64,000 bases of DNA from Monocercomonoides exilis PA203 (Eukaryota; Protista; Preaxostyla): positions 930,001-994,000 of the forward strand of contig LSRY02000035.1 of the NCBI GenBank assembly GCA_001643675.2, given 5' to 3'. A model generated the notes under the pieces. It was not told the origin of the DNA. It saw only the letters and a program-made list of their open reading frames with translations, and made no database searches. The position numbers and the translations under genes are program-made. Below, one piece after another: positions 14,000-64,000 of this stretch. The number at the start of each line of letters is the position of its first letter. The first letter of the stretch is position 1.

Positions 14000-14253
14000 T
14001 TTTGGTGAGATATGTTGATTTTTATTTTTCTTGATCTAATAATTTTATTATAGGTCATATTTTGATCTTTCAAACTAATGAATGGAAAATTTTTCTGTTA
14101 TCGAATTTTATTTGTGGAAATTTATTGATAAATTCAATATGAAATAGTTGGCTGGATCAACAACTCATTAATTAATCAGCCTTGAAATTTTTATTTTAAA
14201 AAAATATTTATTTAACTGGTGAATGATGTCATATTATTTGCATTGGCATAAAT

Positions 14254-14509
14254 AGGTTATTATTTTCGAAACCCTGTTTTTTCTTTAATAAATTTATGTT
14301 CGAATATTTCACTGGAACGTCAAAAAAAAAACATCGTTAAATGAAAAGACTCACAAAAGACATCATCATCTTTATTTGTGTTAAAAACACTTGTCTATTA
14401 CACGGTTGTGATGAATTCAGCATTCGAACATAAAATCTCTTTGCAAAAATAAACAATATATCCAAAATAAAATTTTCGAAAAAAGTTATGATTTCAAAAA
14501 TAATAACCC
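14254..14509 (+). mobile_element. MITE copy A (256 bp, degenerate)
   Basis: Ends AGGTTATTATTTTCGAAA ... TTTCAAAAATAATAACCC. AAAT lies directly on both sides (14250-14253, 14510-14513). Internal similarity to copy C (AAACACTTGTCTATTACACGGTTGTGATGAATTCAGCA vs AAACATTTGTTTTTGAAACAGTTCTGATGAATTAAGCA). Confidence 0.75.
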
Positions 14510-14634
14510 AAATTAATTTATAAATTTTGACATTTCAAGAAAAATGTGGGAAATTTATTATTGAAAGGATTTCATTGTCTAATAAGTGTGAAAATCGCTT
14601 GTTGACTGATCAAAGAAAAGAATTTTCAGCATAT

Positions 14635-14885
14635 GGGTGATTATTTTTGAAATTATAACTTTTTTCTGGGAGTCAATTTTTCAAAAATTGTCATTGGGAA
14701 AAGATTTTGTGATAGAATTGTTGAATTAACACAACTTTTATCAAAACAAATGTTAAAGCAGAAATAAATATGATGTGGTCTTTTTAAAGCCTTTTCACTT
14801 TTCAATGTTATTTTGTTTATATAAAGGAGAAATATTCGAACCGAAATTTTTATTAGAAATAATACGACATCAAAAATATTGACCC
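14635..14885 (-). mobile_element. MITE copy B (251 bp), inverted relative to copies A and C
   Basis: Ends GGGTGATTATTTTTGA ... TCAAAAATATTGACCC. Flanks ATAT/AAAT. Aligns to the reverse complement of copy C (CATTGGG.AAAGATT, AAAACAAATGTT.AAGC, TTCGAACCGAAA, ATACGACATCAAAAATA). Confidence 0.8.
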
Positions 14886-15824
14886 AAATATTTTAAATTA
14901 AGATAACAAGATCGAATTTTTTTATTCTGGATTACGTAACTTCATTTCAAATTTAATCATATCATTATCAAAAACACCTTCTATTTTGGTGATGATTTGT
15001 GAGTAATAACAGAAATTTAATCAAAATACCAAATTTCATTTGATTTGAAAAATTTTCACATATACGGCTTTTCAAAAAGAATAACAAATTTGCATAATTA
15101 TATTTGAAATGATTTTGATGCTTAAATTTCAAGTGCATATGTAAATTGTTTATTTTTTTGTGATTTTAATTTTGATCTAAATATTAAGCTTTTAAAAAAA
15201 GTTTGATTGGGTCATCTTTTTAATGTGACTTTTTCCTTAACTGGCACTTTTTTTGTTTTTGCTCGCCAACAATTGAAAAACGCTGGATGACTTTCAGCAC
15301 TTTATAAATCCTTTTTAACCAGTTTTATTCTATTTATTTACTGTCTTATTATTTATTTTTGTTTTTTATACATTTAGAAATTTCGTTTTTTTTTTTTTTT
15401 CGCGTTAAATTTAATAGGACTTTTACCAGCCCACCAGGCAACTCAAAAGAAATTGATGAGTTATTTTGAATTGCATAAACTATTATTTAACTGTTTTTAA
15501 ATTCTTTTTTTCACAAACACTTTTTTCTTGTTTTTTTTCACATTTCATTTTTTTAATAACACACAAACATAATACTGATTATTTCTTTATAAATATAATG
15601 AAATGATTAAAATAAAAAATTTATATGAAAATAAAACATTCTTATAATGAAGTGCTGTCAAAATCGAACATTGTTTTTTTCTTTCTGTAAAGAATTCATC
15701 AAAATATCAAAAATGTGATCTCAGATCATCATAGGTTGGTACCATTTGCATATTCCAGACAAGTACATTTCAACAATGTTCAACTTTTTAAACATTTCAT
15801 TAAAAGAATGTTTTATTTTCATAT

Positions 15825-16080
15825 GGGTGATTATTTTTGATGTCGTATCGTTCCATTCAAATTTTTCGGTTCGAAAAAACTCCCTTGAATTTTAACAAAT
15901 GAACGTAGAAAAGAGAATATGCATTTTCATAAGTCCATCGTTTTCAATTCAGCTTAAACATTTGTTTTTGAAACAGTTCTGATGAATTAAGCACTTGTAT
16001 GAATAATCTTTACCCAATGGCAAACAATCTTTAAAAAAACAGCACACCGAAAAATGTTATTATTTCAAAAAGAATCACCC
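15825..16080 (+). mobile_element. MITE copy C (256 bp) nested in the right arm of the foldback element
   Basis: 16-bp TIR GGGTGATT(A/C)TTTTTGA (15/16 match). ATAT is duplicated at 15821-15824 and 16081-16084. The left arm shows the empty site with a single ATAT. Confidence 0.9.
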
Positions 16081-16299
16081 ATATAAATTTTTATTTAAAT
16101 CATTTCATTATATTTATAAAGAAATAATCAGTATTATGTTTGTGTGTTATTAAAAAAATGAAATGTGAAAAAAAACAAGAAAAAAGTGTTTGTGAAAAAA
16201 AGAATTTAAAAACAGTTAAATAATAGTTTATGCAATTCAAAATAACTCATCAATTTCTTTTGAGTTGCCTGGTGGGCTGGTAAAAGTCCTATTAAATTT

Positions 16300-16302
<3 letters not shown>

Positions 16303-16344
<42 letters not shown>
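16303..16344 (+). repeat. A42 homopolymer in the right foldback arm
   Basis: Paired position in the left arm is T15 (15386-15400). Confidence 0.9.
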
Positions 16345-16345
<1 letters not shown>

Positions 16346-17000
16346 GAAATTTCTAAATGTATAAAAAACAAAAATAAATAATAAGACAGTAAATAAATAG
16401 AATAAAACTGGTTAAAAAGGATTTATAAAGTGCTGAAAGTCATCCAGCGTTTTTCAATTGTTGGCGAGCAAAAACAAAAAAAGTGCCAGTTAAGGAAAAA
16501 GTCACATTAAAAAGATGACCCTATTAAATGTGATAAAAAACAAAAATAATCAGTTTCCAATGGTATCTTTAATTTTGTTCAAGGATATTTGTTTCATGAG
16601 ATATAATACACCTTTTGAAATATTCTTTATAAGAAAATCTAAAAAAAGATCCAGGAAAAAAAATTCACAATTTCAAAAATTTGATATTTTTCTGCTTTTT
16701 TAAAAAAGCCTAGGTATTTTTTTCAACATCGAAGTAATTGTTTCTTCCCTTTTCAACAAAGCAATAAATATTTATAGAATAGTATTACAAAGAAAAATAT
16801 TCGAAATAATAAATTGTCATCATCTTTATTAATCAAAAAACATTAATATTTAATTTTAATTATTTCGTTATTTATTCAGCATTTTTGATGGTAATTATCA
16901 ATTTAAAAAGAAGAAAAAGACAAAAGTTCATTTTTGAAAGAACATTGATCTTACCATCATTTATCCTTTTAATTTATTAGATTTTTTATTTTGAGGATTA

Positions 17001-17974
17001 ATGATACAACCACAAGGTTTGATAAGAAATTTGAATATTTGCTAACATTTATTTGATAATTCATGTGAATTTCTTATTTGTTGTTTTGACTTGAAAAATG
17101 TTAACATTCAAAAATTATCCCTCACAACATTTAGCAAGTGTCGCAACTGGCATCGCAACACTATATGTCAATAACCTGAACGACAAACTTAAAAAACAAG
17201 GTTTTCTTTTTTATTTTATGAAACTATTCATTCATTCTGATACTTTATTAAAATAGAACTGAAAAGGAATTTATATCTTCTTTTTTCGCAATATGGAATT
17301 GTTATTGATATAGTTTGCTTAAAAACACAAAAAATGCGCGGGCAAGCTTTTATTGTATTCCGTGAACGGGGAATGGCCGCAATTGCAATGAAAAATCTTC
17401 AAGGAAAAAACTTTTTCGGAAAGCCTATGGTATGCAAAAATTTTAATAATAATTTTGAATTTTAAAGTTCATCTCATCATTTTATATAAATTTCTATCAA
17501 ATGCAAGAACATTGCATATTCTAAAAGCCAGTCTTATGCAACAATGAGAGAAGAAGGATTAGACCCTCTATGGATGGAAAGAATGGTTCAATCTGAGCAA
17601 AGAATATTATCACTATTAGAGTCTGTTAAGCCACAAAATTCTTCTGAGGCTTCTTCTTCCACTTCATCTTCATCTGTCCCAACCATACCTCCCAATAAGG
17701 TAATTTTTGTTCAAGGACTCTCACCTTTACGAACTGAAAGCAATCTTGTGGCCTTGTTCTCCAAGTTTGGTAATTTTTAATTGAATGTTTTAATTAAAGA
17801 ATGCTTTGTTTCGACAGATATCCAGGATTTGTTGAAGTTAGACTTGCTCCAACACAAAAGGAAGTTGCCTTTGTTGAATATCAGACAATTGAACAATCTA
17901 CTCGAGCTATCGGAGGACTAGACGGTTATGTGATGGAAGATGGATCAACACTTCGCCTAAGTTATCAAAAATGA
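17001..17974 (+). CDS. SNRPB2: U2 snRNP B''/U1A (SNF) two-RRM spliceosomal protein
   Basis: Exons 17001-17016, 17135-17200, 17257-17429, 17508-17764, 17818-17974. [48 protein letters not shown] has a U2B''-type loop. RRM2 reads PPNKVIFVQGL...YPGFVEVRL...AFVEY. An alternative in-frame ATG lies at 17098. Confidence 0.88.
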
Positions 17975-18052
17975 TTTTATAAAATTAAAAAATTCACACT
18001 TCAGTTATTTTTATGTTTAAATTAGAAAATGTGATATGGCTTCAGATCAAAA

Positions 18053-19611
18053 ATGGACAAGCCTCAAACTCTTGTATATCAAGAAAAGTCATTAAATTAC
18101 ACTTGCTATGATGCAAAGTGGATACCAAAAAGTGCTAGATTTGTTGTCTTAGGATGTATGCCAAGAGGAACAGGTGTAATTGAAGTATTTTCTCTTTATG
18201 GAGGAAAGCTTGAATCACAAAAACAGGTTAATTTTTTAAATCATAATTCTTCACAAAGAGTTATAACATTTTTCATATAATCACCCAAACATTTTTCATT
18301 TCATTGTAGATTGAAAAAAAGGCATCATTTAAATGTGGAACTTTTGGAGCTGCTCTTGAAGATCGTCTTCTTGCCACAGGAGACTTTGACGGAAGACTTT
18401 CACTTTGGTTTGCAACGATTGCTGAAATGTTTAATTTTTTAAACAATATTTCTTTAATTTTTGCAAATATTGTTATTTTTTTCAAAAAGGGATTTAGAAC
18501 ATCTTTCATCGCCATTATACACAGTTGGAGCACATAAACAGATTATCAACACAATAGATGGCTGCGGCGGTCGATGGGGACATGGAGCACCTGAAATTGT
18601 AACTGGAAGCCGAGATGGCTGCGTTCATGTGTGGGATCCTCGTCAAGACTCCGGACCTGTTATGAGCCTTATTGCACCAGAAAATCTTGAAAAAAAACCA
18701 GATTGTTGGGCAGTTGCTTTTGGTATCATATTTCTATTCAAAAAAACTTTTATGTTAAAAATATAATACCAATATTTATGAATAACTTTTTTAAAAGGAA
18801 ATTCTTTTGATGACAGCGAACGTTGTGTTGCATGCGGCTATGACAACGGAGATTTGAAGTTATTAGACATGAGAACACGTTCACTACGTTGGGAGGCTAA
18901 TCTTAGAAATGGAATCTGCTCTTTAGAGTTTGACAGAAGAGATATCGAGATGAATAAATTGATTGCAACAACTTTGGAAAGCAAGTTCTATTTATTTGAT
19001 ATGAGAACTCAACATCCACAAAAGGGTTATGCTAATTTGGCACAAAAGTTTGTTGATTATTTGAAAACAAAGAATTATGACATTATATGGATTGATTGAG
19101 AAAAACTATTCAACTTTTTTCATTCTTTTACAATTTGTATAATAATCTTCCACATTTTCTGTTTCGTTGATTATTTGTGTTTCCAGGGCATCAGAAGGAA
19201 CATTATGGGACGTTTCTCATCTTCCACAAAATAGAGAATTATTTGCAACAGCCGGAGGAAAAGGAAGCATCGACATATGGAGGTTTAGTGGCAGTTAAAT
19301 ATCTTTTTTAGGCATTTATAATATTGTTGTACGTTATAAATAAACAACCATTTTCAATGCAATTGGATGATCGCAATTTAATCATATGATGCAGATATCG
19401 ATATCCATCACAGCGATGGCGTGTTGATCCCGAGGACGGAAAGACTGAAGGTGTAATGGGAGAGGTGGAGCATGTGTGTGAACAGATGCTGTCTTCACAG
19501 CCAATTCACTCGATCGATTGGAATGCAGACAAACTGGGGCTGGGTGTTGTGACTTCGTTTGATCAGACAGTCAGGGTGATTATTGTGACAAGGCTGAACA
19601 AATATGAGTGA
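18053..19611 (+). CDS. WDR92: WD repeat protein 92 (dynein axonemal assembly factor 10)
   Basis: Multi-exon. KPQ...[82 protein letters not shown] match WDR92. Confidence 0.93.
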
Positions 19612-20144
19612 AACGAAAAGAACTGTTGAATGATACACGACTGTTTATATGAGACAAAAGTTCATTCAGTGCAGACTCTGCAAAACATGTATCGTAATTC
19701 CGTTTATGATAACTTCACTTCCAAATTCATTTCTCACTACAAACTGGTTTATTGATATTTTTTTATGACCTTTTTATTTCAATTTTTTTTTATCGCAAAC
19801 ATTCGAAAAGACACTTCATGGTTCAATTTGAAAATTATAATAAAAAAATTGACCATTTAAAATATTCCGAAGAAAGAAATCTTTATTTATGCAAAGCAGC
19901 GAGAAAACATTAAGTGAAGATTAAATAGATGCAAATTGAGGTGTACTGAAGTTGAGATGAAAAATGAAAAAACAAAAAGGAGCATAAAAAATAGATTCAT
20001 TCTTCTCCATTACTAAAATATTCAATTCAGTCCTATCAGCTTCTCAGGCATGATTCCATTTCATTTGCAAGACTGTTGAAAAATTCTTCTTTTGCAATAA
20101 TTCCTTTCTCATTTCTTTTTGTGTACTTCTTTTCTTACTCCCAT

Positions 20145-21148
20145 TTATGCTCCAATTGGGAGAGGAGATGGGTCATCAATGTACTTGCCGAATAATTCGA
20201 AGTTGTCCTGCTTCACAACCCATCTTACCCCATTTTTGTCAGCAATTACCACATTCGTTAACCCTCCTGACGCAGAATCTCGATGCTGTGCGTGATAGAT
20301 TGAACGCCGCGCTATATCAACAGCTTCTTCTTCTGTCAGATCTTCGCGATAATATTGGTCAAGAACACCGATAGCAAATGGCGAACCAGAACCACATGCA
20401 AAAATCTTTCCTTGAATTCTTTGGCCTTCAGAATCTATATAATACATATCAGGCCCCTGCAAAATCCACATAAAATTACATATATATTCATTTTAATAAT
20501 TGTATAAAATTTATCAAATTTCATACAAATTGATCATATCCGACAATCATTGATCCAACAGAAAGGTCCCTTCCCTTATATTGATTCAAAATATTGGAAT
20601 AATATTTGCTTGCTCCTGCAACAGTCATAGGACGCTTGTTTTTAAGTTCGTATAACCTGTATTAATTAGAAAAAAAGTGTTTATTTGTGAGAAAAACTAT
20701 TTCAAATTAAAAAAAAGCTCCGTACTGTGCTTCCGCTCCTACAACACGGCTCCAATATTGGCAATCCGCAGCAGAACCTGCCATAGTAGAAACCATGATG
20801 TCATTGATTTGGATAATTTTTTTAACAGTTTGGCATGCTGGACAAAAGGAAAAATTTCTCAAAATTATTTTTGTCAAAACAAAAATCAAACAAATAACTG
20901 TCCCCATTGTACTTCTGGAATCAGATGCAATACATGCAAAATCTTTGCACAAGAAAGCTAAGCAAGTTGTACCATGCGCATAGTCAATAGAAGTGCCTTT
21001 AATCTATCAAAATTTCGGAGGATTGTACAAAAATAAATAAAAGTGAAAAAATGAATTCAATGGCAAAATCCCGATAAACATAAGTTATTTTAAATGTATC
21101 TCAAACTTTGTGGTCAGATTTAGGAGTATCCTTGAAAACAATCGACAT
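20145..21148 (-). CDS. PSMB5: 20S proteasome subunit beta5 (chymotrypsin-like)
   Basis: AHG|TTCLAF processing site, DSRSTMG, TVKKIIQIN, TMAGSAADCQYW, LSVGSMIVGYD, GSGSPFA, HRDSASGG. About 4 introns. Confidence 0.93.
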
Positions 21149-51109: not shown

Positions 51110-54100
51110 TTATGCGAATGAATAAAAATGAATCAAACAACCGAAATTCAATTTGTTTTCTTTCTCTTCTCCTTGCTCTCCTTCACGACTGCCCCTATCT
51201 TCTTTTTCTTTACTCTCTTCACCATCGTTCGAATTCATATCGTATTCAATTGCATCTGATAAAGTTACAACCCATCCATTTCCATTGCTCCCCTCAAATA
51301 AATTTCGCTTCAACTCAACAAGCGTTGGACGCACATTTTGCTCTTGTGTCATACAGTTCTTTGCAATATCCAAAATTTCACTCGCCTCTAACCTTTCCAA
51401 GCAAGGTCGCTCCCCATTAACTATCTTTTGCCCTGCAATTTCTGCCTCATATTCTCCAAATGGGATTTCCAGCGTCAAGCACTCCCAAAGCATCATCCCA
51501 ATTGAGAATGCCACAGATTTCTCAGTTGCTCCCATGTTCCTGTTCATCAGCAGCTCAGGCGCCTTCCACCTCAAACACTCTTTCCAGTTGCCTTCATCGT
51601 CCTCAAACGCTGATGAGGGTAGAGAATCTTCATCATCATTGCCACTGGCAGATGTCACAATAGTTGATGAAGAGATGGAAGAAGAGTCGGAATCTGATGA
51701 ACAGTCAGAGTGCAAAGCGATGCAAATTACCATGTGCTCTGAAAAGAGTACAATATGGGGACTCAAGTTTGACAAGGAGGGAAGTTCATCTTCCTCATCT
51801 TCAAACGAGTGGAGTGCTCCGTTCGCCACCCAGAATAAAACCTGTGCCGCTGTTTGTTCTCTCTCCTTTAATGAACCAATTGCTATTTCCTTTGTCTTAT
51901 TCAGCCCATGCAATAACATGAACAGCGAATCCCTCAGATCCACAATCAATTTCTCGTGAGGCGATGAGCATGCCATTGCATCTACCAGATTCGACATCGA
52001 TGAGGTGGTTGGACACAAATCCTCCCCTCGAACAAATGTAGAATCTGAATCAGTTGAACAAGTGGATGAAATGGATGGCGAAGGAGTTCTATTTCTAACC
52101 TTTTCCTCTTCAACCTTTTCCAATGCCCATTGAGGGATCTTGTCTGAATCCTTTCCAAGAATACATTCAGTTGATCCACTCTCGGATAGAAGATGCTCTG
52201 ATGATTCTGAATGTTGCATATTCGTGTCATATACCCTCTTCTTTATCCTCTCCTCATTCTTCTTCTCTGCCTCCTTCTCTGCTCTCCTCCACTGCTCTTC
52301 TGGCGACATCTCCATCGTCACCATCTCAAATACCTTTGGATCTTTTCTGATATTATCATTCACAATCTCTCTCAGATCTTCTGCTTCATTCTTAACCTTC
52401 TTCCACCGAACAATAAATATTATGGATACAATAAGAACAATTAGTAATATGATACCCATGACAATCACAATTAACAACCAATACGATTTTCCTTCATTTC
52501 CTCCTTCAACAATATTTCCCTCTCCCTTTGAGCCACTCTCGCTCCCGTTCTTCAAAAGAAATCCAACTGTTGACGAGGAGGCTTCCTTGTTTCCAAACAG
52601 AATCGACACTGAAACTTCTGTTTCAGGGGGTGCATCTGCAACAACAGACAAGGGCACTTTGCCATCCACCTCACTCTCATCCACAAATCCAGAATCTTCA
52701 AACACATAATGGTCGATAACTTCCACATCGTTTGTCAGCGATATCACGCGGAATGACAGGTTGCATGGAAGCAAAAGCGATCCCTTGAAAATGAGCCTCA
52801 GGTTGTTTCCAGCTTTTTCCACTTCAACATTTCGAAGTGTTGGGATGAAGAACGGAGATGCTCGTTCTTTCGCAACTCCTTCCAGTTCACACCCTTCATT
52901 CAGAATCCACAGCGATGTGTTATCTTTTATTCCATCTCCACCCTTCACACTCACAATCAATTGCGCAGAATCCGAGCACTTCACATTTCTTCGAACAGAT
53001 GTATATCCCTCAATCGATGGGTTGTTGTTCTCAAACTCTCCTTTCTCAATCTTCAAACTGCCTCCCCTCATGCTCAATCCTCCTCTTTTGCAATTTCGAA
53101 TTGTTGTTTCCTTCATCTCCACATGGCTCTTCTCCATTTCAATCATTGATCCATTCCATTGGCATATCTCTTCTCCTTTCATTGTCTCATTTCTTTTCTT
53201 TCTCACTTCTTCGTTTCCCTCCCCATCAAACGCACACATCTCGATTTCAACATTTGCACTTTCTATTATCTCCACCATCATCCCTTTCTCCTTCGAATTC
53301 GAACATCCCTCAAACGAGCTGTTCAAAACTCTCACCAACTCCTTTGCTCCATCCATCTTCATCACACCTCCCTCATCCTCCACAGAAATGTTCTTTACTG
53401 TCATTTCTTTCACCTCCACTGCTGCTTTGCCTCCAACAACAACAACATCTCCTTCACACACAATGTTTGAGAGGCTTGTTTCATCCAGTGCCACCCTCGA
53501 TTCTTCACAAAATATCAACAATGGTGCTGATGAGTGCAAATCTCTGAACATTGTTTCTTCCATTTTCAATTCTCCACTTTCCACTCTCACAATCGAGCAC
53601 TCAAGCCTCTGCTCCCGTTCAGATGATCCAAATGCACATTCACAAATCTCCAACCTTCCATTCTTCACTTTCATCATGCTCCTGTGCTTCGCTTCAAATC
53701 CTCCTCCAAACACAAACAAGCACTTCTCCACAACACACTCATCCACAAACACCACAATGCTCTTCTCACTCCATATTTCATCAATCGTTCCATTCAGATG
53801 GATTGCCGCCTCACTTCTTTTCATCGAAGTTATTCTCGCATCTCCAATCTCGCATTCTCCCCCAATCATCCCTTCTTCCTCAATCACAATGGCATTCATG
53901 ATCCCTCTTTGAATGTGTTTTGCTGCATTGTTGATGCTCTGGCATGGATCATCCAGTGATCCACATTGTCTGCCATCTGCTCCATTCACATTCACAAACA
54001 CTTGAATGCCATAATAGAACTTGATCAGAGGAATCAGATCAACATCAACCCTGTTGATCTCATCTCTCCCATAAATCGAGTTGTTCGATTTCAGTGCTTC

Positions 54101-57100
54101 CTGGTTGAAATCAAGCACAAACAGTGTTTCGTTGATCTGCTTTTCAATCGAGTGGCATCGAATGAACACATCCTTCCCCACAAACGCTTCATTCATCCCA
54201 AACCGGATGTTCTCCATCATCAACCCAAGTGATCCAAATGCATTGCCGGCTGGCTCATTCAGATCGACTCCATCAACCATCACTCCTCCACCATATCCAT
54301 TCACTTTCGAGCATTTGCACATCGAAAATGAACTGTCATTTATTCTCAAGAATGATTCTCCACTTTTCAGCACCACTTTCATCCCTCCTCCTTCCTCGCT
54401 ATTCTCGCTTTTGCAATTCATTATTGAGCACGATTCAACCATACACTCCATCCCTTCTGAAAATGTTCCCACACTCAATACCCCCGCCCCATTTTCTCCA
54501 AATGTGATGTTTGTGAATGAACAGTTCACAAATCTCAATTCTTGTTTGTCGTTTATGAGACAATCAATTCTCTCTCCTTTCAATTTTGCTTTTTCTGTTT
54601 CTCTATTTGTCTTTCCAGCCACAGTCATCGAAATCATGCTTCTTTCCATCACTTCAGCATTCGTGATATTCACATCCTCAACAATCACCTGAGTTACAAT
54701 TGGGCTGAAACTGATGAACCCTTTCAATTCACCAATCATATTCAAAATGCATCTCTGAATCATGGCGCTCCCTCCATTCACTCTCATCAAGCAATATCCT
54801 GCGATCTCTGTCATTCCATTCATTGAGCCATATGAGCAATCCACAACAGATAGACAGGCATTTGTTCCTGATGATTCGATCAATATCTCATGTTGTGTGT
54901 TCATAGTTGGCTTGGTGAATGAAACATTGGCAAACGACAAACTCATATTCGACAATATCATTGAGTCATTCAAATCATTCTCGTCTTCATCACTGATAAT
55001 CACTGCTGTCCCTTTCTTTGTTCCTTCAATCACAACTTGTGGCAACTCTGAATCTTGTGAATCTGGTGGCGATGAGGAAGAAAATGATATGGAATGGCTC
55101 AGCAACCCTGATCCCATAATGGCAATATGCATTTCCCCTTCTCCAAGCGTTGAATATCGAAGTGATATCAAGTGGTCAATCGATGAACATGGTGCTTCTG
55201 AATATCCACACCCACTGAAGTCTCCTCCTCCATCTTTCGAAACATACCCATTTCCACTCCAGTTGCTCCACAAATACACAACAAGTGGAATCACGTATCC
55301 CTCTTCTCCTGTTGTCTTCATCTCCCATCCACACAACTCATCCAACGATCCCAACTCCTCATCACTCATCTTCCATTTCAAGTGCTCCTTATTCACAATC
55401 TCACTCAGATCCCATCCAGAAACAAAAGCATTCTTCCCTTTCCAAGCGTTGCATCCCTCAAATTCTATTCCTTCGAGCACAAATGATTCCATCGCATCTG
55501 ACAATTCAACAAACATCCCTCCTCCCATCCCTCTCCCTCCATTCTCAGCATCCTCTGATGGAACTTCACATTCAGATAAATTCACATTATTCATTTCCAA
55601 GCTCCCTCCCTTCCCCACTGATATCATCATCCCTCCTCCTTTCATCTCATTTCCACTTGAGCAGGTTGAAGAAAAATTGCATTCTTCAACTTTTGCGCTT
55701 CCTCCTTCATTCATCCCAATATTCAAACATCCCCCTCCTCCACTTCCACCTGCCACATTCACCTCCACTCCATTCACTCTGCTGTTCTTCAATTCCAATT
55801 GAGCTCCACTTGTCATCGTTATTGGTGATTTCCCATTCATTGTCAGTGTCACTCCACTTTCCATCACAAATCCATCAATAATCAGATTCCCTCCTGTCAT
55901 GTCAATGATGCTGTATCCTATCTTTCCATCTGTCATTGCCCCGCCCTCAAATGAGACTGAACAGTTCGTCACACTGAGTGTTGTTGTTGAGTGAATGAAT
56001 GCACTTCTCCTCGAATTCAACTGACCTTTCACAACAAATGAAAGTCTCCTCATTGCCAGTGAACTCGAGCATCCAACAAGCCAGTCTTGTGTGGCTGATC
56101 CTCCATCACTCACATTCACTCCCATCCTCCCACCCTCTGATGATGAAGATGACACTATTCTGCCTGAAATTATCACACCAAATGATGGTCCTGCTATTTC
56201 ATTGGTTATTGACGAAGATGAGACAACCTCAATTTCTTTTGAACTTTCACTCAATCTCGAGTTCGCACAATAATCAACTGTCAAACACCTGAATCCATCA
56301 AATCCACAGTGACTATGATCCATCCCATTTCCTCCACTCCCATCAACAATCACCATTGCCCCCATTGTACACAAATACACAAACAGCGGAATCACTTCAT
56401 TTTCATCCCCATTTTCACTCCCACTCAGTTTCAATGCATCTGATGGAATGGTGCTTGTGTCAAAAAAGGCAAATGAGCTGGTATTCACTTTTGACTCCAA
56501 AAACACACCACTCCCACAATCAACAAACACATCCTTCCCATATGAGGCCATATTCCCATGATCTTTCGAAAACTTCACATTATGTTCAATTGTCGATCCA
56601 CATCCCTCGCTTTCCATCATCACAAACATCCCTCCTCCTCTTGTTCCTCTCCCTCCATTATTCTCCGCCTTATTCCCATCAATCACGCTCATTCCATTCA
56701 CAACCACTTTTCCATTTCCCTTCAATTCAACACACATTCCTCCTCCTTTTCCACCACCACAACTGCACCCATTCACATTGCATCCATCAACAGTCAACAT
56801 TCCACTCCCTCCAACTGTTCCTTTCATCCATCCTCCATCTCCCTCATTCTTCACAACTCCACTGATATTGCATCCTGAACAAATCACACTCGCCATTCCT
56901 TCACAAAATTCAATCGCTGAATGAGCTCCAAACACAAGTGCTTCTCCAATCACAAATCGTTCCATTTTTAGACTCCCACCTTGCACAATCACAATGCTGT
57001 ATCCAAAGGCCACACTCGATGAGCTCTCTGACATATGAGCAACTGAGCAGTCTGTGAGTGTGAGTGATGAGCTGGTCAAAGCAATGAGTGATGTTGCACT

Positions 57101-60100
57101 CGATAACGAAAATGGAATTTGGAACGCAATGTTCTTTATTGAACTCGCACTCTCAACATTTATCAAATACGAAGTTGTCATTCCACTCGGCACCTTCACA
57201 TTCACATTCGTCTTGTTAATCCCACAATACACCTCCCATTCATATGACCCTGCCATCGACACAACTTCTCCCAGCTCAAACTCAGGATCCAACACAATAT
57301 TCTTCTTTGACGAGCTAAATCTATTCTGTGCTGCCTTTGTGATCGTTTTGCATGGAAAATACCCAAACCCACAAAACCACGAGTCATATCCTCCAAACCC
57401 ATTCACCTCCTTCCCCACATGTGCTGCTCCTGAAAATGCATCCAAAAACACATTCAATGGGAATATTCCCATCCCTTCCTCATTCCGGTCATATCCCATC
57501 AGCTCATCATAAATCGATGCATTGTGTCCAACATTCAGCTTTACGGCTGTTATTGTTCCACTTGTCATCCAACTCCCATTCACAAACACATCTTTCCCTC
57601 CCAATGTTGCACTGCAACCAACAAAGTTCACTGATGATATCGCAAAATCAAATGAGCTATCTGTCAGCCATAGCATCACCCCTCCTCCATATCCACTGCT
57701 CCTACACTGTTTGAACGCTGTTGATCCTCCACTGTGCGATGTTGATGTTCCAATTCGAGCTTTGCTTGTCGAAGACGCTAACTCAATCTTTATACCACCT
57801 CCATTCCCATTCACGCATTCACATCCTTCTATTGTTGTGTTCCACACCACAAATGTCTCTCCTCCCTTTACACTTTTTGCAATCACAACCCCATCACCTG
57901 TTGTCCGATTCACATTCCGAATTGTCAAATTCCCCAGCACACTCTCTCCTGATGTTAATCCTGCTGATGATGGTTCAGAAAATAGAGGTTGACTCATTTT
58001 CATATTTTTAATCTCAACTGCACTAATCTTCAGCTGCCTCAACGCAACTTCAAACACAGATGCTGAAATAACACTTCCTCCAGTTGGACCTAAGATCACC
58101 ACCTCCTCCAGCAAAAGTGATCCACTCCCCACAGACACCAAAAATACACTCGGCGATGAGCTTCTTGCCACATTGTGGTCGATCTCCACATGCCCCACCT
58201 CCAGTTGCCCACTCGTCACGCTGAATAGTGTTGTCGAAGAGGTCGAAAGCGCACTCGTCCCAATCACACTCACCTCCCTCCCTTTCCCATCAATCGAAAT
58301 CTTCTTTTCCCCAACACTGATTGTTGTCCCCTCACTCTCATGCCTTCCACCCAGCACTGTGATTGCCGAGCTCAGCTGTGCCATGCTCGAACTAACTGCA
58401 TGCCCCACTGTCTTGCACGGCGCTGCCTCACTCATCCCACACAGATTGCTCGTGTCATCTCCACTCACCCCAACATATCTATCCTTCATCCCCTCCTTCA
58501 GCCAATCCTTCTTTTGTGTTTCCTGAAAAGTATTATTTAAATAGCACACTCTTTTTTCATTTGCATTCGTTGTGTAAGATTCATAGAATGGGTTGTTCGA
58601 TGAAAAGAGATTGTATCGATCTTCAAAATACACATCATGGCCATATGGAGTGGAAGCGTTGCAACTGCAATCGTGAAAGAAAAAGAAATAGCAATAAATG
58701 TTGTTGCTTGGAGCTGTTGATTGACTTGGAGCAAAACACAATCCTCCGCCAGTTGATGTTGCGTTGCACGAAATGAACTGTAGGCTCCTCAATTTGAATG
58801 CAGATGGAACACCATAGCAATACATCCCTCCACCATTATTATTTGTAAGATAGCACGAAGTGAAGAAACACTCAAACACACAAGCACTCTCTCCTTTGCC
58901 ACTTTCTGTTCCAATACAGGCAGTTCCAGAAACATTAAAATTATAAAGATGAATCCCTCCTCCATAATTATTTCCAATGCAGTTCTGGAATTCGCAACCA
59001 CTTATCCTAATGCAAGCCGAAATTAAATAAGCATATATCCCTCCTCCACCATATCTATCAGCTGTACATGCATTGAATGAATTGTTTTCAATCTTGATTG
59101 AACTGATCGAACGGCTCATTATTCCTCCACCATAAGAACGTGCAAAGCAATCATTGAATGAGCAACATTTCACTGAAAGTGTTCCTGATGCCAGATTATA
59201 TATGAAAATAGCTCCTCCATTTGAAGCTCCATCTGTATAACCGAGACTTGTCCCTGTTGTTTTCGAGCCATTCCATTCGCACCAGGTGAAAATGTTCGCT
59301 TCATCAGCTGTTTCATTCTGTCTTCCTGGCTTTGATGGATTCTCTTCGCTTCCAATGAACTCAACATTTTTCGTTCTGAGGCATCCAACAAAAGAGGCAT
59401 TCGAGGCAGTCAACGAAGATGATCGTAAGTTGATCGATCTCACAATCCCTCCATCATACGCATCGCAAACTGATGAAAATGAGCAGCTGCTCATCGTGCA
59501 TTCGCTCTCACAAAAGGAAGGGCTCAGCAACGAAGATTCAGTTGGCTTGGTGGAAATATTGAAAACCACCAAATCCGAAAGTGAAACACCTCCAATTGAT
59601 GCAGACCCCAAAAATGGTGCAGATGACAGGCAAAATGAAGAGAAACACGATGAAGCGACAGCAACACGGCAATGATCTGCTTTTTCGTTCTCAACAGCAT
59701 TTGACGAAAAAAGTGGTGGGGCATCAAATGAAAGCAGACTTGATGGGATCAGAGTGATGTTTTCAACAATTCCACAGCTTTCAATGAGTTCGAGTGGGGA
59801 TGTCCCACAGCCGACAGCAACCTCACATCCCCTCAAAACAGCATGACTCCTTTCCTTTCCACAAATCACAGACTTTCCATTCACACATCCCAAACTCAGC
59901 CCTTTCCATCCAACTGAGCTGTTCTTCAAAACAAAATTTCCTTTCAAAAAACATTCTCCAATTTCCATGTTGTTTGTCTGTTGCCCTGAAGTGCCCTCGT
60001 CAGAATGTTCTTTATTTGTTTTCATGTGGCTCCTTTTTTCATTCCAAAGCTCCTTCCCTTCGTTGTTTTCTCTATTTTTTCCGGATTTGCTTTTCATATC

Positions 60101-60334
60101 CGTATTTTCCTTCTCGATTCTGCCTTCAAATGTTGCATGTGCCTCAAAATAATTGTGACTATCGCTTTTGCCAATTGATTCTTTTCTGGGGAAAACTTCA
60201 ATTTGTGCAGGAATCGTTTTTTCGCTTTTTGAACAGCCAGTTTCAGACATATCTTCGAATCCTGTGTAACTGTTCACATGTTTGCATCCAATGTTCCATT
60301 CAATCACAGCCAACAAAAATGTCGATATATGCAT
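51110..60334 (-). CDS. Giant intronless receptor-like pseudokinase (copy 2), paralog of 4811-13999
   Basis: 3074-aa ORF, collinear and mostly identical to copy 1 at an offset of about 46,335 bp. It differs in discrete patches, the TM helix and the C-terminus. Confidence 0.9.
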   Translation of the reverse strand: MHISTFLLAVIEWNIGCKHVNSYTGFEDMSETGCSKSEKTIPAQIEVFPRKESIGKSDSHNYFEAHATFEGRIEKENTDMKSKSGKNRENNEGKELWNEKRSHMKTNKEHSDEGTSGQQTNNMEIGECFLKGNFVLKNSSVGWKGLSLGCVNGKSVICGKERSHAVLRGCEVAVGCGTSPLELIESCGIVENITLIPSSLLSFDAPPLFSSNAVENEKADHCRVAVASSCFSSFCLSSAPFLGSASIGGVSLSDLVVFNISTKPTESSLLSPSFCESECTMSSCSFSSVCDAYDGGIVRSINLRSSSLTASNASFVGCLRTKNVEFIGSEENPSKPGRQNETADEANIFTWCEWNGSKTTGTSLGYTDGASNGGAIFIYNLASGTLSVKCCSFNDCFARSYGGGIMSRSISSIKIENNSFNACTADRYGGGGIYAYLISACIRISGCEFQNCIGNNYGGGIHLYNFNVSGTACIGTESGKGESACVFECFFTSCYLTNNNGGGMYCYGVPSAFKLRSLQFISCNATSTGGGLCFAPSQSTAPSNNIYCYFFFFHDCSCNASTPYGHDVYFEDRYNLFSSNNPFYESYTTNANEKRVCYLNNTFQETQKKDWLKEGMKDRYVGVSGDDTSNLCGMSEAAPCKTVGHAVSSSMAQLSSAITVLGGRHESEGTTISVGEKKISIDGKGREVSVIGTSALSTSSTTLFSVTSGQLEVGHVEIDHNVARSSSPSVFLVSVGSGSLLLEEVVILGPTGGSVISASVFEVALRQLKISAVEIKNMKMSQPLFSEPSSAGLTSGESVLGNLTIRNVNRTTGDGVVIAKSVKGGETFVVWNTTIEGCECVNGNGGGIKIELASSTSKARIGTSTSHSGGSTAFKQCRSSGYGGGVMLWLTDSSFDFAISSVNFVGCSATLGGKDVFVNGSWMTSGTITAVKLNVGHNASIYDELMGYDRNEEGMGIFPLNVFLDAFSGAAHVGKEVNGFGGYDSWFCGFGYFPCKTITKAAQNRFSSSKKNIVLDPEFELGEVVSMAGSYEWEVYCGINKTNVNVKVPSGMTTSYLINVESASSIKNIAFQIPFSLSSATSLIALTSSSLTLTDCSVAHMSESSSSVAFGYSIVIVQGGSLKMERFVIGEALVFGAHSAIEFCEGMASVICSGCNISGVVKNEGDGGWMKGTVGGSGMLTVDGCNVNGCSCGGGKGGGMCVELKGNGKVVVNGMSVIDGNKAENNGGRGTRGGGMFVMMESEGCGSTIEHNVKFSKDHGNMASYGKDVFVDCGSGVFLESKVNTSSFAFFDTSTIPSDALKLSGSENGDENEVIPLFVYLCTMGAMVIVDGSGGNGMDHSHCGFDGFRCLTVDYCANSRLSESSKEIEVVSSSSITNEIAGPSFGVIISGRIVSSSSSEGGRMGVNVSDGGSATQDWLVGCSSSLAMRRLSFVVKGQLNSRRSAFIHSTTTLSVTNCSVSFEGGAMTDGKIGYSIIDMTGGNLIIDGFVMESGVTLTMNGKSPITMTSGAQLELKNSRVNGVEVNVAGGSGGGGCLNIGMNEGGSAKVEECNFSSTCSSGNEMKGGGMMISVGKGGSLEMNNVNLSECEVPSEDAENGGRGMGGGMFVELSDAMESFVLEGIEFEGCNAWKGKNAFVSGWDLSEIVNKEHLKWKMSDEELGSLDELCGWEMKTTGEEGYVIPLVVYLWSNWSGNGYVSKDGGGDFSGCGYSEAPCSSIDHLISLRYSTLGEGEMHIAIMGSGLLSHSISFSSSSPPDSQDSELPQVVIEGTKKGTAVIISDEDENDLNDSMILSNMSLSFANVSFTKPTMNTQHEILIESSGTNACLSVVDCSYGSMNGMTEIAGYCLMRVNGGSAMIQRCILNMIGELKGFISFSPIVTQVIVEDVNITNAEVMERSMISMTVAGKTNRETEKAKLKGERIDCLINDKQELRFVNCSFTNITFGENGAGVLSVGTFSEGMECMVESCSIMNCKSENSEEGGGMKVVLKSGESFLRINDSSFSMCKCSKVNGYGGGVMVDGVDLNEPAGNAFGSLGLMMENIRFGMNEAFVGKDVFIRCHSIEKQINETLFVLDFNQEALKSNNSIYGRDEINRVDVDLIPLIKFYYGIQVFVNVNGADGRQCGSLDDPCQSINNAAKHIQRGIMNAIVIEEEGMIGGECEIGDARITSMKRSEAAIHLNGTIDEIWSEKSIVVFVDECVVEKCLFVFGGGFEAKHRSMMKVKNGRLEICECAFGSSEREQRLECSIVRVESGELKMEETMFRDLHSSAPLLIFCEESRVALDETSLSNIVCEGDVVVVGGKAAVEVKEMTVKNISVEDEGGVMKMDGAKELVRVLNSSFEGCSNSKEKGMMVEIIESANVEIEMCAFDGEGNEEVRKKRNETMKGEEICQWNGSMIEMEKSHVEMKETTIRNCKRGGLSMRGGSLKIEKGEFENNNPSIEGYTSVRRNVKCSDSAQLIVSVKGGDGIKDNTSLWILNEGCELEGVAKERASPFFIPTLRNVEVEKAGNNLRLIFKGSLLLPCNLSFRVISLTNDVEVIDHYVFEDSGFVDESEVDGKVPLSVVADAPPETEVSVSILFGNKEASSSTVGFLLKNGSESGSKGEGNIVEGGNEGKSYWLLIVIVMGIILLIVLIVSIIFIVRWKKVKNEAEDLREIVNDNIRKDPKVFEMVTMEMSPEEQWRRAEKEAEKKNEERIKKRVYDTNMQHSESSEHLLSESGSTECILGKDSDKIPQWALEKVEEEKVRNRTPSPSISSTCSTDSDSTFVRGEDLCPTTSSMSNLVDAMACSSPHEKLIVDLRDSLFMLLHGLNKTKEIAIGSLKEREQTAAQVLFWVANGALHSFEDEEDELPSLSNLSPHIVLFSEHMVICIALHSDCSSDSDSSSISSSTIVTSASGNDDEDSLPSSAFEDDEGNWKECLRWKAPELLMNRNMGATEKSVAFSIGMMLWECLTLEIPFGEYEAEIAGQKIVNGERPCLERLEASEILDIAKNCMTQEQNVRPTLVELKRNLFEGSNGNGWVVTLSDAIEYDMNSNDGEESKEKEDRGSREGEQGEEKENKLNFGCLIHFYSFA

Positions 60335-60409
60335 TTTTGGTGAGATATGCTGGTTTTTATTTTTCTTGATCTGATTATTTTATTATAGGTCATATTTTGA
60401 TCTTTCAAC

Positions 60410-62580
60410 TTTTTTTGAAATATGCTTTTATCTTTCGATTGCTGAATGGACAAATAATGGCTGTTAGTCCAATAATCCGGCAATCGAATTTATGCACTTT
60501 TGAGAGAAACTTGTTTCAGTTTTTTGATTAACACAAAAATTCCACTTCGTTTCCTTCTTTTCAGACACATTTCATTTTTTCCCTCTTCAAAAATCAGAAT
60601 TTCAATAACAAAAGCACCAAAAATATCTTGTGACCAAAGCAACAAGAGAAAGATTTACAGATGAGCTATCTCTTTGAAAACTCTTCAAATGGCTTGTTGC
60701 CCACTCCAGAAGCTTTGGATTAGCACTCAAAATATTTATTTTGCTCAACCTTTTGCCCTTTAACCTTTCCCTTTTTTCTAAGTTTGCTTCAAATAAATTC
60801 ATTCAATTCTCAGGAAAACAAAATGTTGTGATGAAACAATTTCTGATAAACAGATTGCTCAATCTTTCATCAAGCTCAACCGCATGCTGTATGTTGTTCA
60901 GCTATGAGCTTTAAAATCAGTTGAAGTGGTTTGCTTTTTGTCAAGAGCAATTGCCTCTTCCTTTCCCTCTTGCTCAAAAGCAATCCACTTCTTCATCTTC
61001 AACATTTCTCCTCCTTTTTCTTCTTTTTCATTTTTATTTTTGTGGGCAGAGGGCAAAAAATAATCGTCTCCTCTTCAAATTATCGCTTGAATCCTTTTGA
61101 CGCGAACTCAATTTCTTCATTGTTTTCCACTTCTCTCCTTCAAATTTTCTTCCTCTGCTGCACCAGTTGAATGATTTGGCTTTATTTCTCTTCTTTTGAG
61201 TCTTTCCTATTTCTGATATTTTCCAAAAAGAAACATCAAGCTTTCCAATAAGGCATTGCATCAACGAAAGTTGACTAACTGGAGAATGTTTGACCTGCGG
61301 CTTCAACAAATTATGCTGTTTATTAGTCATGTTTCATTTCTTTGAAAATGAAAAAAGAAAGAAACACAGTTGGCAATGAAACTCACTTGCGGAGAGTTTC
61401 CAATAAAAAAGAACATTTTATCCGTTCGAGTGCATATCGTTTGTTTGCCATTTTCCTGATCTTCTGCATTCAATCTAAATTGTTTTATCTTCCAATTATT
61501 TCTTCATTCACTCTCAAAATAATGTGTTGCAAGAGCTGATAAATCTGAATCAAATGAAGGACTGCATATCTGGCATCTTTTCCTTCGGCCGAATGTGTAT
61601 CTTGCCCACCAGAACAAAGAAGCATATTTGCGTCTGAACCTCCAATCACTTCATTCAGCGGAATATTATTGTTTCTGATGAGGGAAAAGCATTCCAATCC
61701 GCCTTGTTGCAAGGATTGATGGCTGCTGCAGTCTGAATCAGAATGTGAGTTGTTCAAACAAACAGGTGGCTCCAAAATAAATTCAATCGCAATCATATCG
61801 AAAGAACCCTTTTTCCAGGCGCATCGCAGAGGATGTTCCACAAATGCTCCTTCAAAAAAGCAGTAGAATGCAAATGATTATCCATTTCTGGCCTTTCTCC
61901 ACAAAAGCGAATCAGCAAAATGGATTGCTCTCAAGCTTTTTTTTTTTTTGTTCGTTCAAGGGCAGAATTGCTGTTGTTTCTTTCAACAGCAAAAGCAGAA
62001 ATCGTGTAGAATCCATTCATGAAACTTGTCCCAAAAGAAACTCAGAATCAAATTAAAGGCTTCTTCGATACACACAATCAATCGTGCAAAGATTGCACAA
62101 AAATGTTGAGAAATTACAAAAAGCAATCGTCTGTGCAACAAGATTCTCAAATTCGAGATGTTTGGATTTTTTTGTGAGTGCATGAATCTGGCTGCTATGT
62201 GTCAACAAGTCAGCTCCAATTGGCATCTCAAAATCTCACAATATGATAATTTGATCACGAAACATTCAAAGTGAAAGGCATTTCCATGTGTAGAATACCC
62301 AATGACGATTTAGAGAGATAAAAATATTGATTATCTTCCATCTTTGCCAGACTTTGTCTTTTTGCAAGAATGCACAAATAATCCCCCATTGCATATTGGA
62401 ATTTTTCAGTAAAGAAATCCTTTTTTCGCTTGTGCTTCCATGTCTCATTCGTCTCTGGTTCTTTTTGAGAAACAAACTCGGTTTTGAATTGTGCATTTGC
62501 TCTTCAGTTTGTATCTTTTTTTTTTTGGTTGATATTGGAGCAAAGCTGCATCTGGATCTCTTTTTGCTTCAACGTTAACA
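60410..62580 (-). pseudogene. Probable decayed gene or mobile-element remnant
   Basis: More GC-rich and sequence-complex than intergenic DNA. Many short protein-like minus-strand frames are broken by stops and shifts. No identifiable motif. Confidence 0.35.
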
Positions 62581-62584
62581 GATA

Positions 62585-64000
62585 GGGTGATTTATTAACC
62601 CGAATATTTTTTTGAAAACCCGAATAAAAAATAAACAAATTTATTTTTGTGTATTGTGTATTGATTTCGTTTTTTTAAAAATATTAATAATAAATATAAT
62701 CAACAAGCTCTCGTTTCACAATTTTTCGAGTATTTCTTTCTTTTTTTTCATCATCAGAAAAATCATCATTTAAAATTTTCAATGGGTTGAATTTTCTTTT
62801 TTTCGGTTTTTCATCTTCAAACAAAGCCTTTTCAATTTCTTCATTATCTTTTTCTTCATTTTTTGACTCTTTTCTTTCATCCTTTTCTTTTTTCCATTCT
62901 ATTAAGAATTCTTCATCGGTAATTAATTTTCCAAAATAATCAAACCTTTTTGTTCTTTTCTTCAGAGTGACAGAAGGTTCTTTTGGTAGCTTCGCTAACA
63001 CTTCGTGCCACTGATGTGACAGTACTCCGCTCTTCGCAAATGATGATTTGATTGTGGAAGGCAACAAAGAAGTTTGTAAAGCTTGTGGAAGCACATCAGC
63101 TAGCGCTTCTCGTCGCAAAACAACAGAAGAAGAAGAAGGAGCTTCGTAATTGGCATTAATTGTTTTTTTAAAAACAGCAAATACGCCACGATCCAACGGC
63201 TGTGCGATGTGAGTGGTGTGGGGTACGAAGGTGACCACATCTATTGAAGAATCGGCGAACTTCTTCCACAAGTCAGGCTGCGCTCTCGAAGAATGAGAAT
63301 CAAGAAGGAGAAGGCAACGTTCATCATTCTTCTTCAAAGTTTCTCTTCTTTGTGTGATCCCTGGAAGCAACACATCTTCAGCATATTTGAGGAATAGCGC
63401 TTCAGTCATCCAGCCTTCATTTTCACCCCAAACATCTAACTGCGAACTCAGAACAAAACGCAGTTCATCTGGCAGTTTCCGACAAGGCCACAGAACGACG
63501 CTTTTTAGGGAGTAGCCATCAGCTGCAGCTGCAACGACGAGAGTTGCATTCGGCATGTTCATTGGTGTTTTGGAGAAACCGGCAGGCATGTCGGAAGGAT
63601 GGAAAACAAGAGTCGAGAAAGAATCAGAGAGTCGAAGAGAGGATTCATCAATATTAAAGATGAGAGAGTTAGAATAATGATGTTGATCATGAAGGTTTTG
63701 TAGAAGAGTGAAAAATGGAAGAAGAGTTTGTTGATTTGATGCGGAGAGCCTTTGGATGTCGACATTTCGAGGATGAGAAGCTTTGAGATCGGGGTTCCTT
63801 TTTGTGTATTGATAGGGATAGGTTTTTGAAATGTTGACTTCTTCATCTTCTTCGTCGAAGTCGTCTTTTTTCCTATCATTGATAACAGCGTTCATCTGAA
63901 TATATTAAAAATAGATAAATACAACAAATAAAAAACTGTGACAAACTAATTTCCTCATTTGTGCAGCGTTATAACTTGTCCCATTTTCACATTCGATTTT
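62585..64000 (-). mobile_element. pogo/Fot1-like DNA transposon, one end visible, continuing past the window
   Basis: Candidate terminus GGGTGATTTATT at 62585, preceded by GATA. Subterminal direct repeats AACCCGAATA at 62597 and 62617. Located 99 bp beyond the transposase stop. Confidence 0.7.
62684..64000 (-). CDS. DDE_1 (pogo/Tc5/CENP-B family) transposase, DD35D, 5'-truncated by the window
   Basis: IFNIDES, AADG, NEGWMT, LLLLDSHSSR and PHTTHIAQPLDRGVF, with 35 residues between the 2nd and 3rd Asp. A 51-nt GTTTGT...TTCAG intron at 63896-63946 joins the in-frame upstream exon KIECENGTSYNAAQMRKL. Confidence 0.93.

Follow-up and report, generated by a model that had tools for sequence, protein, structure and literature searches.

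The window, by which we mean the whole 64,000-nucleotide stretch of Monocercomonoides exilis DNA that was analysed, very probably holds parts of two independent cut-and-paste transposon systems, one consisting of MITEs of the Sola2 group and the other of a pogo element and a foldback element that duplicates TA. A preliminary description had joined the MITEs, the foldback and a transposase gene near the window's end into one linked system, and this is not supported, the pogo element and the foldback being flanked by TA and the MITEs by A-N-N-T. Every string and flank that it quoted is nonetheless in place in the window: GGGTGATTATTTTTGA at the MITE ends at 14635 and 15825, GGGTCATCTTTTTAA at the foldback end at 15209 and, in reverse complement, up to 16521, and GGGTGATTTATT at the pogo element end at 62585, while the flanks AAAT/AAAT, ATAT/AAAT and ATAT/ATAT of the MITEs and GATT/TATT of the foldback have the letters given. 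Taken by itself, the 7-mer GGGTSAT shows no enrichment across the window (15 observed vs 9.8 expected), and there is no element end at its matches at 18280, 19574, 20170, 28569, 33055, 42756 and 57675.

MITEs and giant elements with A-N-N-T duplications

The window contains three copies of a non-coding, Sola2-type MITE of 256 bp. Copy 1 (14254-14509, no strand assigned) has a decayed left end that begins AGGTTATT and lies between AAAT at 14250-14253 and AAAT at 14510-14513. Copy 2 (14635-14885, minus strand), which is opposite in orientation to copy 3, is flanked by ATAT at 14631-14634 and by AAAT at 14886-14889, where one base has decayed. Copy 3 (15825-16080, plus strand) is nested within the foldback, in its inner region, and is flanked by ATAT at 15821-15824 and 16081-16084. 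The opposite arm of the foldback (about 15620-15640) is uninterrupted and reads a single ATAT, and it provides the empty site for this copy.

The same pattern is seen throughout the genome, where the longer form of the MITE end motif occurs 2,738 times, far above chance (1 in the control), and the MITE copy number is about 1,400. The flanking 4-mers are identical in 31 of 46 candidate MITE pairs (ATAT in 18, AAAT in 4, ACAT in 4, ATTT in 3, AATT in 1 and ATCT in 1), and over all 46 pairs position -4 is A in 42 and position -1 is T in 44. The 4-bp duplications claimed earlier for the MITEs are therefore confirmed and follow the pattern A-N-N-T, which may be read as a 4-bp A-N-N-T duplication or as an N-N duplication of 2 bp made by elements whose outermost bases are T...A, two forms that sequence alone cannot separate. 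TTAA is absent from the flanks of the 46 tabulated pairs.

No Sola2 transposase was found within the window. Elsewhere in the genome, however, there are giant elements with nearly the same ends, two of which were delimited: one of 20,059 bp on C47 with the duplication AAGT/AAGT, and one of 21,974 bp on C24 with ATAT/ATAT. The giant-type end motif has 402 matches genome-wide against 0 for the control, and there are about 200 giant-type elements. Among the 100 matches listed, A-N-N-T precedes the end nearly always and TTAA never; as read off the listing, about 13 of 15 plausible pairs spaced 4.5-22 kb apart have a matching ATTT, AATT, ACAT, AAAT or ATAT. Over the first 24 bases, 22-23 are identical between MITE and giant ends. 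Well-kept MITE ends match in 20-24 of 30 bases, and the right end of copy 1 in 23 of 30; MITEs and giants resemble each other over no more than about 24 bp, or weakly up to about 60 bp.

The giants encode a protein of 1,154-1,214 amino acids that combines a ubiquitin-protease domain (UCH, about 1e-15 to 1e-16) with a DDD core. A library search with this C-terminal core returned 657 homologues, including PPL_04538 of Heterostelium album (E 2e-14 in the library search and 1e-21 pairwise), and the alignment with PPL_04538 spans the three conserved Asp motifs. The gene for PPL_04538 lies inside a 14.4-kb element on GL291006, at 3.1-6.4 kb counted from its 5′ end. In its ends and its AAAT/AAAT duplication this element agrees with PPa-4, a Sola2-Fanzor element of Polysphondylium pallidum, as given in the machine-read, imperfect text of supplement 11 of PMC3627910. 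The evidence thus supports a putative Sola2-homologous transposase in the giants, a class assignment that follows one homology chain to a published element. By hmmscan, no Pfam model for a Sola2 core was matched, and an Atlas lead to DUF7869 was not confirmed. A word-based protein search returned M. exilis paralogues alone, and in the P. pallidum element the ORFs of the part presumed to be Fanzor had no Pfam match. An inverted repeat of 327 bp that surrounds the transposase gene of the giants was considered as the element end and rejected, as it is internal.

The preliminary description had offered a second, unseen Sola-like transposase as an alternative to the pogo enzyme, and it is this alternative that the giants support. 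The 256-bp MITEs are very probably Sola2-group passengers, and they carry the same inverted end of about 24 bp as the 20-22 kb autonomous elements. The giants' DDD transposase, fused to its ubiquitin-specific protease domain, would bind the MITE ends and cut at GGG...CCC, and so would mobilise the MITEs in trans. Integration at A-N-N-T with a 4-base stagger, followed by repair of the stagger, would leave the 4-bp duplication. It is unlikely that the MITEs are instead moved by some other transposase that makes 4-bp duplications, whether from another Sola2 subfamily or from another superfamily. The likeness between MITEs and giants goes no further than about the outermost 24 bp, such that a Sola2 subfamily with a closer end could be the driver, and some 1,400 MITEs set against some 200 giant-type elements leave room for a closer partner. 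However, 22-23 of the 24 terminal bases are identical to those of the giants, MITEs and giants have one target pattern, and the TTAA of piggyBac and Kolobok is missing from the flanks of the 46 MITE pairs, the MITE ends in question being GGGTGATTATTTTTGAAATCATAAC.

The pogo element at 62585 and its terminal resemblance to the MITEs

The last part of the window holds the first 1,416 bp (62585-64000, minus strand) of an autonomous pogo-type transposon with a full length of 2,041 bp (L001:1586-3626, equivalent to window positions 62585-64625). Position 62585 had been proposed as an element end and is a genuine one, as at least 40 copies begin there. The ends are perfect 30-bp inverted repeats, GGGTGATTTATTAACCCGAATATTTTTTTG. 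Retrieval of the far end, where a 4-bp GATA duplication had been a possibility, revealed TA: L001 reads ...cagaTA|GGG ... CCC|TAattt, placing the left TA at 62583-62584 (no strand assigned) and the right TA at the equivalent of 64626-64627, just beyond the window end.

The assignment of a DD35D pogo-type transposase also holds. Exon 2 (62684-63895, minus strand) encodes 403 amino acids that match Pfam DDE_1 (PF03184) at 2.8e-14, and in the translation the second and third Asp are spaced 35 residues apart. From the sequence we predict a 51-nt GT..AG intron (63896-63946, minus strand) between this exon and an exon 1 of 333 nt (111 codons, in phase), whose 3′ part lies at 63947-64000 (minus strand) and whose ATG lies beyond the window at the equivalent of 64279. 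When exon 1 was scanned alone, it gave no significant Pfam match, including to the N-terminal helix-turn-helix of the CENP-B/Tc5 type. The same ends also bound shorter derivatives that are non-coding, and in diverged relatives of 68-69% identity the alignment still begins at the extreme end. Genome-wide there are 732 DDE_1 candidates for pogo-type genes. Longer pairs of MITE ends (L041-L047) were examined as possible elements bounded by MITE ends and rejected as neighbouring MITEs; one such pair held a second, unrelated pogo family with ends ATATAGTCCGTGACAAAACCCGGGAC, truncated on both sides by MITE insertions.

Could the enzyme at 62585 move the MITEs and the foldback as well, making unusual 4-bp AT-rich duplications? 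The three element types do occur together in one window, and the pogo end equals the MITE end for its first 8 bases and the giant-element end for its first 9. However, TA alone is duplicated at every pogo copy checked: it stands on both sides in 10 of 10 fetched copies, whose outer flanks differ between the sides and are unrelated, and it precedes 43 of 45 pogo ends genome-wide, with paired copies having TA alone in common. Beyond the shared start, positions 9-30 of the pogo and MITE ends are identical at 4 of 22, fewer than the 7.9 of the background. The giants have ends that fit the MITE end far better, together with a transposase of another kind and A-N-N-T duplications like those of the MITEs, and the foldback has TA rather than 4 bp. 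This refutes the idea of 4-bp duplications by the pogo enzyme, and the linked reading, which we regard as scarcely credible, fails because the pogo flanks are TA and the ends are unrelated beyond base 8-9. A plain TA together with ends unrelated past the first 8 bp had been named beforehand as the outcome that would speak against linkage, and it is what we observe. The pogo element would rather be moved by its own DD35D DDE_1 transposase, which would insert it at TA after cuts staggered by 2 bases.

The first bases that the pogo and MITE ends have in common, GGGTGATT, are very probably a short resemblance with no common mechanics. That GGGTGATT(T) is functional, with the same tip needed by the two enzymes or by a host factor common to them or with one family having taken the tip of the other, seems quite unlikely to us. 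Nine terminal bases are identical between a pogo and a Sola2 family of one genome, diverged pogo relatives (68-69%) align from the very tip, and the TA-type foldback starts GGGT as well. This last fact also cuts the other way, for if many families begin with GGG(T), as the foldback suggests, just 4-5 further AT-rich bases must coincide. The 732 DDE_1 candidates allow many possible family pairs, so that by a rough estimate chance could suffice, and the match was noticed after the fact. The 9-base identity between pogo and giant ends, GGGTGATTT, we leave informally to chance or convergence; we think it very unlikely that this identity reflects a shared requirement, such as a host end-binding or end-processing factor serving two unrelated transposases, or capture of a tip.

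The foldback element

The foldback, a hairpin element of about 1.05 kb plus the nested MITE, occupies 15209-16521 (no strand assigned) and has arms that are 93-94% complementary. The ends of its family read GGGTCAACTTTTTAATGGGAC, and the target duplicated is TA. In this copy the right TA is kept at 16522-16523 and the left reads TT at 15207-15208. Foldback ends number 129 genome-wide, and among the 100 listed by far the greater part have TA in front. Paired ends have TA in common and not 4 bp, for example at C2:955080/956099, C25:1694100/1695119 and C31:54851/55870. The 4-bp duplication GATT/TATT proposed for the foldback is not borne out, since TA flanks the family as a whole and is all that paired copies have in common; the GATT/TATT flanks are a decayed TA. 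The foldback belongs to a TA-duplicating family, probably of the general type of the pogo element, not to the MITE/Sola2 system, and its earlier grouping with the 4-bp MITEs had put it on the wrong side.

A pogo-type enzyme, encoded by an element with matching GGGTCAAC ends, may mobilise the foldback in trans. A pair with such ends lies 2.4 kb apart at C14:463752-466177. Among the long foldback-ended pairs inspected (L060 and L061), no autonomous element with GGGTCAAC ends was found: L060 was rejected for a nested retroelement inside it, with a reverse-transcriptase YLDD motif visible, and L061 for internal ORFs that are non-transposase.

Significance and comparison with known systems

In the published assembly paper, 35% of M. 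exilis repeats are 'unclassified' (PMC8767320). The present analysis assigns a very abundant repeat of this genome, with about 2,700 end motifs, to the Sola2 group, which helps genome annotation, and removes the tempting claim of a pogo enzyme that makes 4-bp duplications. With a candidate driver named and ends that are nearly identical, it offers a directly testable pair of MITE and transposase in a metamonad. Both systems are ordinary kinds of transposon, and no new mechanism is involved.

The closest comparison is with the dictyostelid Sola2 elements, such as DFa-1/2/3 of Dictyostelium fasciculatum and PPa-1/4/5 of Polysphondylium pallidum, described by Bao & Jurka 2013 (PMC3627910); Sola2 duplications are described there as AT-rich 4-bp AWWT (ATAT, AAAT, ATTT). 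The M. exilis elements resemble them in 4-bp AT-rich duplications of the A-W-W-T form (ATAT, AAAT, ATTT), in G...C termini with short inverted ends, and, for the giants, in large size and extra cargo genes. They differ in the giants' length of 20-22 kb, in looser inner two duplicated bases (also ACAT, ATGT, ATCT, AAGT), and in a MITE family of about 1,400 copies, of a kind that the available text of PMC3627910 does not mention for dictyostelids. The giants' DDD transposase aligns with its dictyostelid counterpart at E 1e-21 over all three Asp motifs, but it carries a UCH/USP domain, and no Fanzor was seen in the giants.

The element at 62585 resembles the pogo superfamily (IS630-Tc1-mariner; Tigger, Passer) in its DDE_1 domain, DD35D spacing and TA duplication, as well as in its inverted ends of about 30 bp, its length of about 2 kb and its shorter non-coding derivatives. 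It differs in having ends that start GGGT, and its exon 1, taken alone, has no recognisable helix-turn-helix Pfam match. The elements of piggyBac and Kolobok make 4-bp TTAA duplications, and the MITEs share this length of 4 bp, but their target is A-N-N-T, never TTAA in 46 pairs, and the associated transposase is Sola2-like.

In rice, Stowaway MITEs and Osmar mariner-like elements form a pair of MITE and autonomous element that are alike in their ends alone. Unlike that pair, the M. exilis pair is of Sola2 rather than Tc1/mariner type and duplicates 4 bp rather than TA, and mobilisation of its MITEs is a prediction from sequence. As in rice, however, these MITEs are non-coding, measure a few hundred bp, and match the autonomous element in inverted ends and duplication type alone.

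Transposable elements of the window

Five transposable elements were identified in the window by direct reading and by BLAST searches with every element type: three copies of a MITE of about 256 bp (14254-14509, 14635-14885 and 15825-16080), a foldback (15209-16521) whose arms are 93-94% complementary and which carries the third MITE inside it, and a pogo-type element that begins at 62585 and has its first 1,416 bp in the window. The motif GGGTSAT was observed 15 times in the window versus 9.8 expected, and none of the remaining matches lies at a repeat end in the BLAST of element types against the window; these are chance matches. The genome searches covered 82.3 Mb in 101 contigs, and the window corresponds to positions 930001-994000 of contig C31.

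The window also holds a paralogous gene pair on the minus strand (4811-13999 and 51110-60334), each about 9.2 kb, encoding 3,062 and 3,074 aa, spaced 46.3 kb apart and 89-98% identical within the blocks compared. The pair has a very strong C-skew on the plus strand and a tyrosine/Ser-Thr kinase domain at the protein end (PF07714, 3.2e-10), and probably belongs to a large kinase family that overlaps 'unclassified repeats' according to the sections of the assembly paper used here (PMC8767320).

TA-flanked pogo and foldback elements

The preliminary description read 62585 as an element end, and it is a true one, because at least 40 genome copies start at the position equivalent to 62583-62585. 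The full element of 2,041 bp (1586-3626 of the fetched stretch L001) has perfect 30-bp inverted ends, GGGTGATTTATTAACCCGAATATTTTTTTG. In the window copy, the far end, 625 bp past the window, reads ...AATAAATCACCC and then TAAT, the near flank is CAGATA, and the only repeat between the two flanks is TA. We observed TA/TA at 10 of 10 fetched copies, with unrelated outer bases, and TA precedes 43 of the 45 ends listed in a genome pattern search, so the suggestion that this enzyme makes 4-bp duplications does not hold. The transposase gene has two exons, and exon 2 codes for 403 aa with a DDE_1 match (2.8e-14) and 35 residues between the second and third Asp; an intron of 51 nt (GT..AG) and an exon 1 of 111 codons, in phase, are predicted from the sequence, and exon 1 scanned alone, separate from exon 2, gave no Pfam match. 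The 62585 element is an ordinary pogo-type transposon.

The pattern search also revealed pairs of pogo ends spaced by about 1,012-1,017 bp; these are short derivatives that share the ends of the full element. Non-autonomous examples with TA flanks and the variant GGGTGATTTATAAACCC lie at C34:256288-257299, C39:464349-465365 and C53:39939-40950 (C, contig), and match the foldbacks in size class. A second family of pogo type, about 2.2 kb long (L049:1431-3650 and relatives at the fetched loci L050-L059), has ends ATATAGTCCGTGACAAAACCCGGGAC, unrelated to the GGGT ends, and one of its copies (L045:1048-2740) is truncated on both sides by MITE insertions.

The foldback family end, GGGTCAACTTTTTAATGGGACTTTTTCC, occurs 129 times in the genome versus 0 for the control, with most pairs about 1.0 kb apart. 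The vast majority of the 100 listed ends have TA directly before GGG, and in pairs such as C2:955080/956099, C25:1694100/1695119 and C31:54851/55870, TA is common to both flanks, not four bases. The window foldback has TA on the right and TT on the left, and its GATT/TATT flanks, which had been taken for a 4-bp duplication, are a decayed TA. Because of the TA flanks of its family, the foldback sides with the pogo elements. Thus, the elements do not form one linked system as had been proposed: the foldback groups with the TA-type pogo, and the MITEs with giant Sola2 elements. The genome contains at least 732 DDE_1 candidates and one GGGTCAAC pair 2.4 kb apart.

One foldback copy (L060, C27:599618-605614) is interrupted by a nested retroelement, about 5 kb long, with an ORF bearing a reverse-transcriptase YLDD motif, and a 4.7-kb element with foldback-type ends (L061, C23:118113-122831) contains several non-transposase ORFs that are possibly captured host gene pieces. 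In the window foldback, the right arm has about 45 A (16303-16347) versus about 15 T in the left arm (15385-15400), a homopolymer expansion restricted to one arm.

MITEs and giant elements with shared ends

The genome has 2,738 matches to the MITE end, GGGTGATTATTTTTGA, at up to one mismatch, versus one for the reversed control. Identical 4-mers flank 31 of 46 candidate pairs from the window and fetched loci (ATAT 18, AAAT 4, ACAT 4, ATTT 3, AATT 1 and ATCT 1), with A at position -4 in 42 of 46 and T at position -1 in 44 of 46. The inner two bases covary across both sides, which marks a genuine duplication rather than a decayed TA. The foldback also offers an empty site for the MITE inside it, as the opposite arm has a single ATAT where the occupied arm reads ATAT-MITE-ATAT. 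The 4-bp duplications originally described for the MITEs are therefore confirmed, where "4 bp" follows the convention of the Sola2 literature, as the same sequences would result from a 4-bp A-N-N-T duplication or from one of 2 bp with T...A tips.

A UCH search of the genome gave a repeated match class within ORFs about 1,000-1,200 aa long, and we assembled the surroundings of two such ORFs from fetched stretches. Both lie in giant elements, one of 20,059 bp flanked on either side by AAGT (C47:1625931-1645989) and one of 21,974 bp flanked on either side by ATAT (C24:891483-913456), and both giants end in GGGTGATTTTTTTTGA(T/A)ATCATAAAAAA, an end type found 402 times in the genome versus 0 for the control. 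Among the matches listed, A-N-N-T precedes these ends almost always, and of 15 plausible pairs with a spacing of 4.5-22 kb, about 13 have matching flanks (ATTT, AATT, ACAT, AAAT or ATAT). MITE ends match giant ends at 22-23 of the first 24 bases, and well-kept MITE ends at 20-24 of 30. MITE interiors are not derived from the giants; the relation is one of shared ends, not internal deletion. The giants' transposase would move the MITEs in trans, and the stagger of the cuts is likewise putative. A second, unseen transposase, for example a Sola-like one, had been one of the two options put forward, and the giants, located elsewhere in the genome with A-N-N-T flanks and a Sola2-homologous ORF, support it.

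The pogo and giant ends have GGGTGATTT in common. They match at bases 1-9 only, and at positions 9-30 the match is 4 of 22, under the background of 7.9 ± 2.4; together with the TA duplication, this severs the proposed link between pogo element and MITEs. GGG(T) starts are common in the genome, and the TA-type foldback also has one. That the identical tip has a functional reason is quite improbable, given that transposon families here are very numerous and the match was spotted after the fact; with such starts common as well, chance or loose convergence could suffice, on a rough estimate rather than a formal test.

Assignment to Sola2

Each giant carries a single long ORF on the minus strand, outside the window, of 1,154 aa in C24 (127-3591 of stretch L070) and 1,214 aa in C47 (126-3770 of stretch L071), with UCH domain matches of 2.4e-15 and 1.3e-16. 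The layout is a low-complexity N-terminus, a complete UCH/USP domain and a DDD core; the C-terminal third has no Pfam match, and an exhaustive library search with the C-terminal part found 657 homologues. Homologues of the core include M. exilis and Blattamonas proteins and PPL_04538 of Heterostelium album PN500 (Polysphondylium pallidum), with which the core aligns pairwise at E 1e-21, all three Asp motifs in register (FDFKE/CDFKE, FFCDSGPH/FWCDNARH and HHGKNICD/YHGKSECD).

PPL_04538 is encoded on GL291006 within a 14.4-kb element (1982-16422 of stretch L072), the published PPa-4 Sola2-Fanzor element. Its ends, GTTAAATTTT...AATAAATC, and flanks, AAAT/AAAT, equal the GL291006_1 lines for PPa-4 in supplement 11 of Bao & Jurka 2013 (PMC3627910), barring machine-reading errors; ORFs of its 3' half had no TnpB/OrfB match in the Pfam copy used. 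In the sections of that paper drawn on here, Sola2 transposases are encoded by the 5' 7 kb of PPa-1/4/5, and Sola2 duplications are AT-rich, 4-bp AWWT sequences (ATAT, AAAT, ATTT). From the alignment, the place of PPL_04538 in PPa-4 and these statements, we assign the giants to Sola2, and with them the MITEs, by virtue of shared ends and duplication type.

The M. exilis assembly paper (PMC8767320) puts repeats at 46%, with 35% unclassified and 4.5% DNA transposons, and neither Sola nor MITEs came up in a term search of its accessible text. To the extent of that text, the Sola2 assignment is therefore new for M. exilis, and the kind of element is already known.
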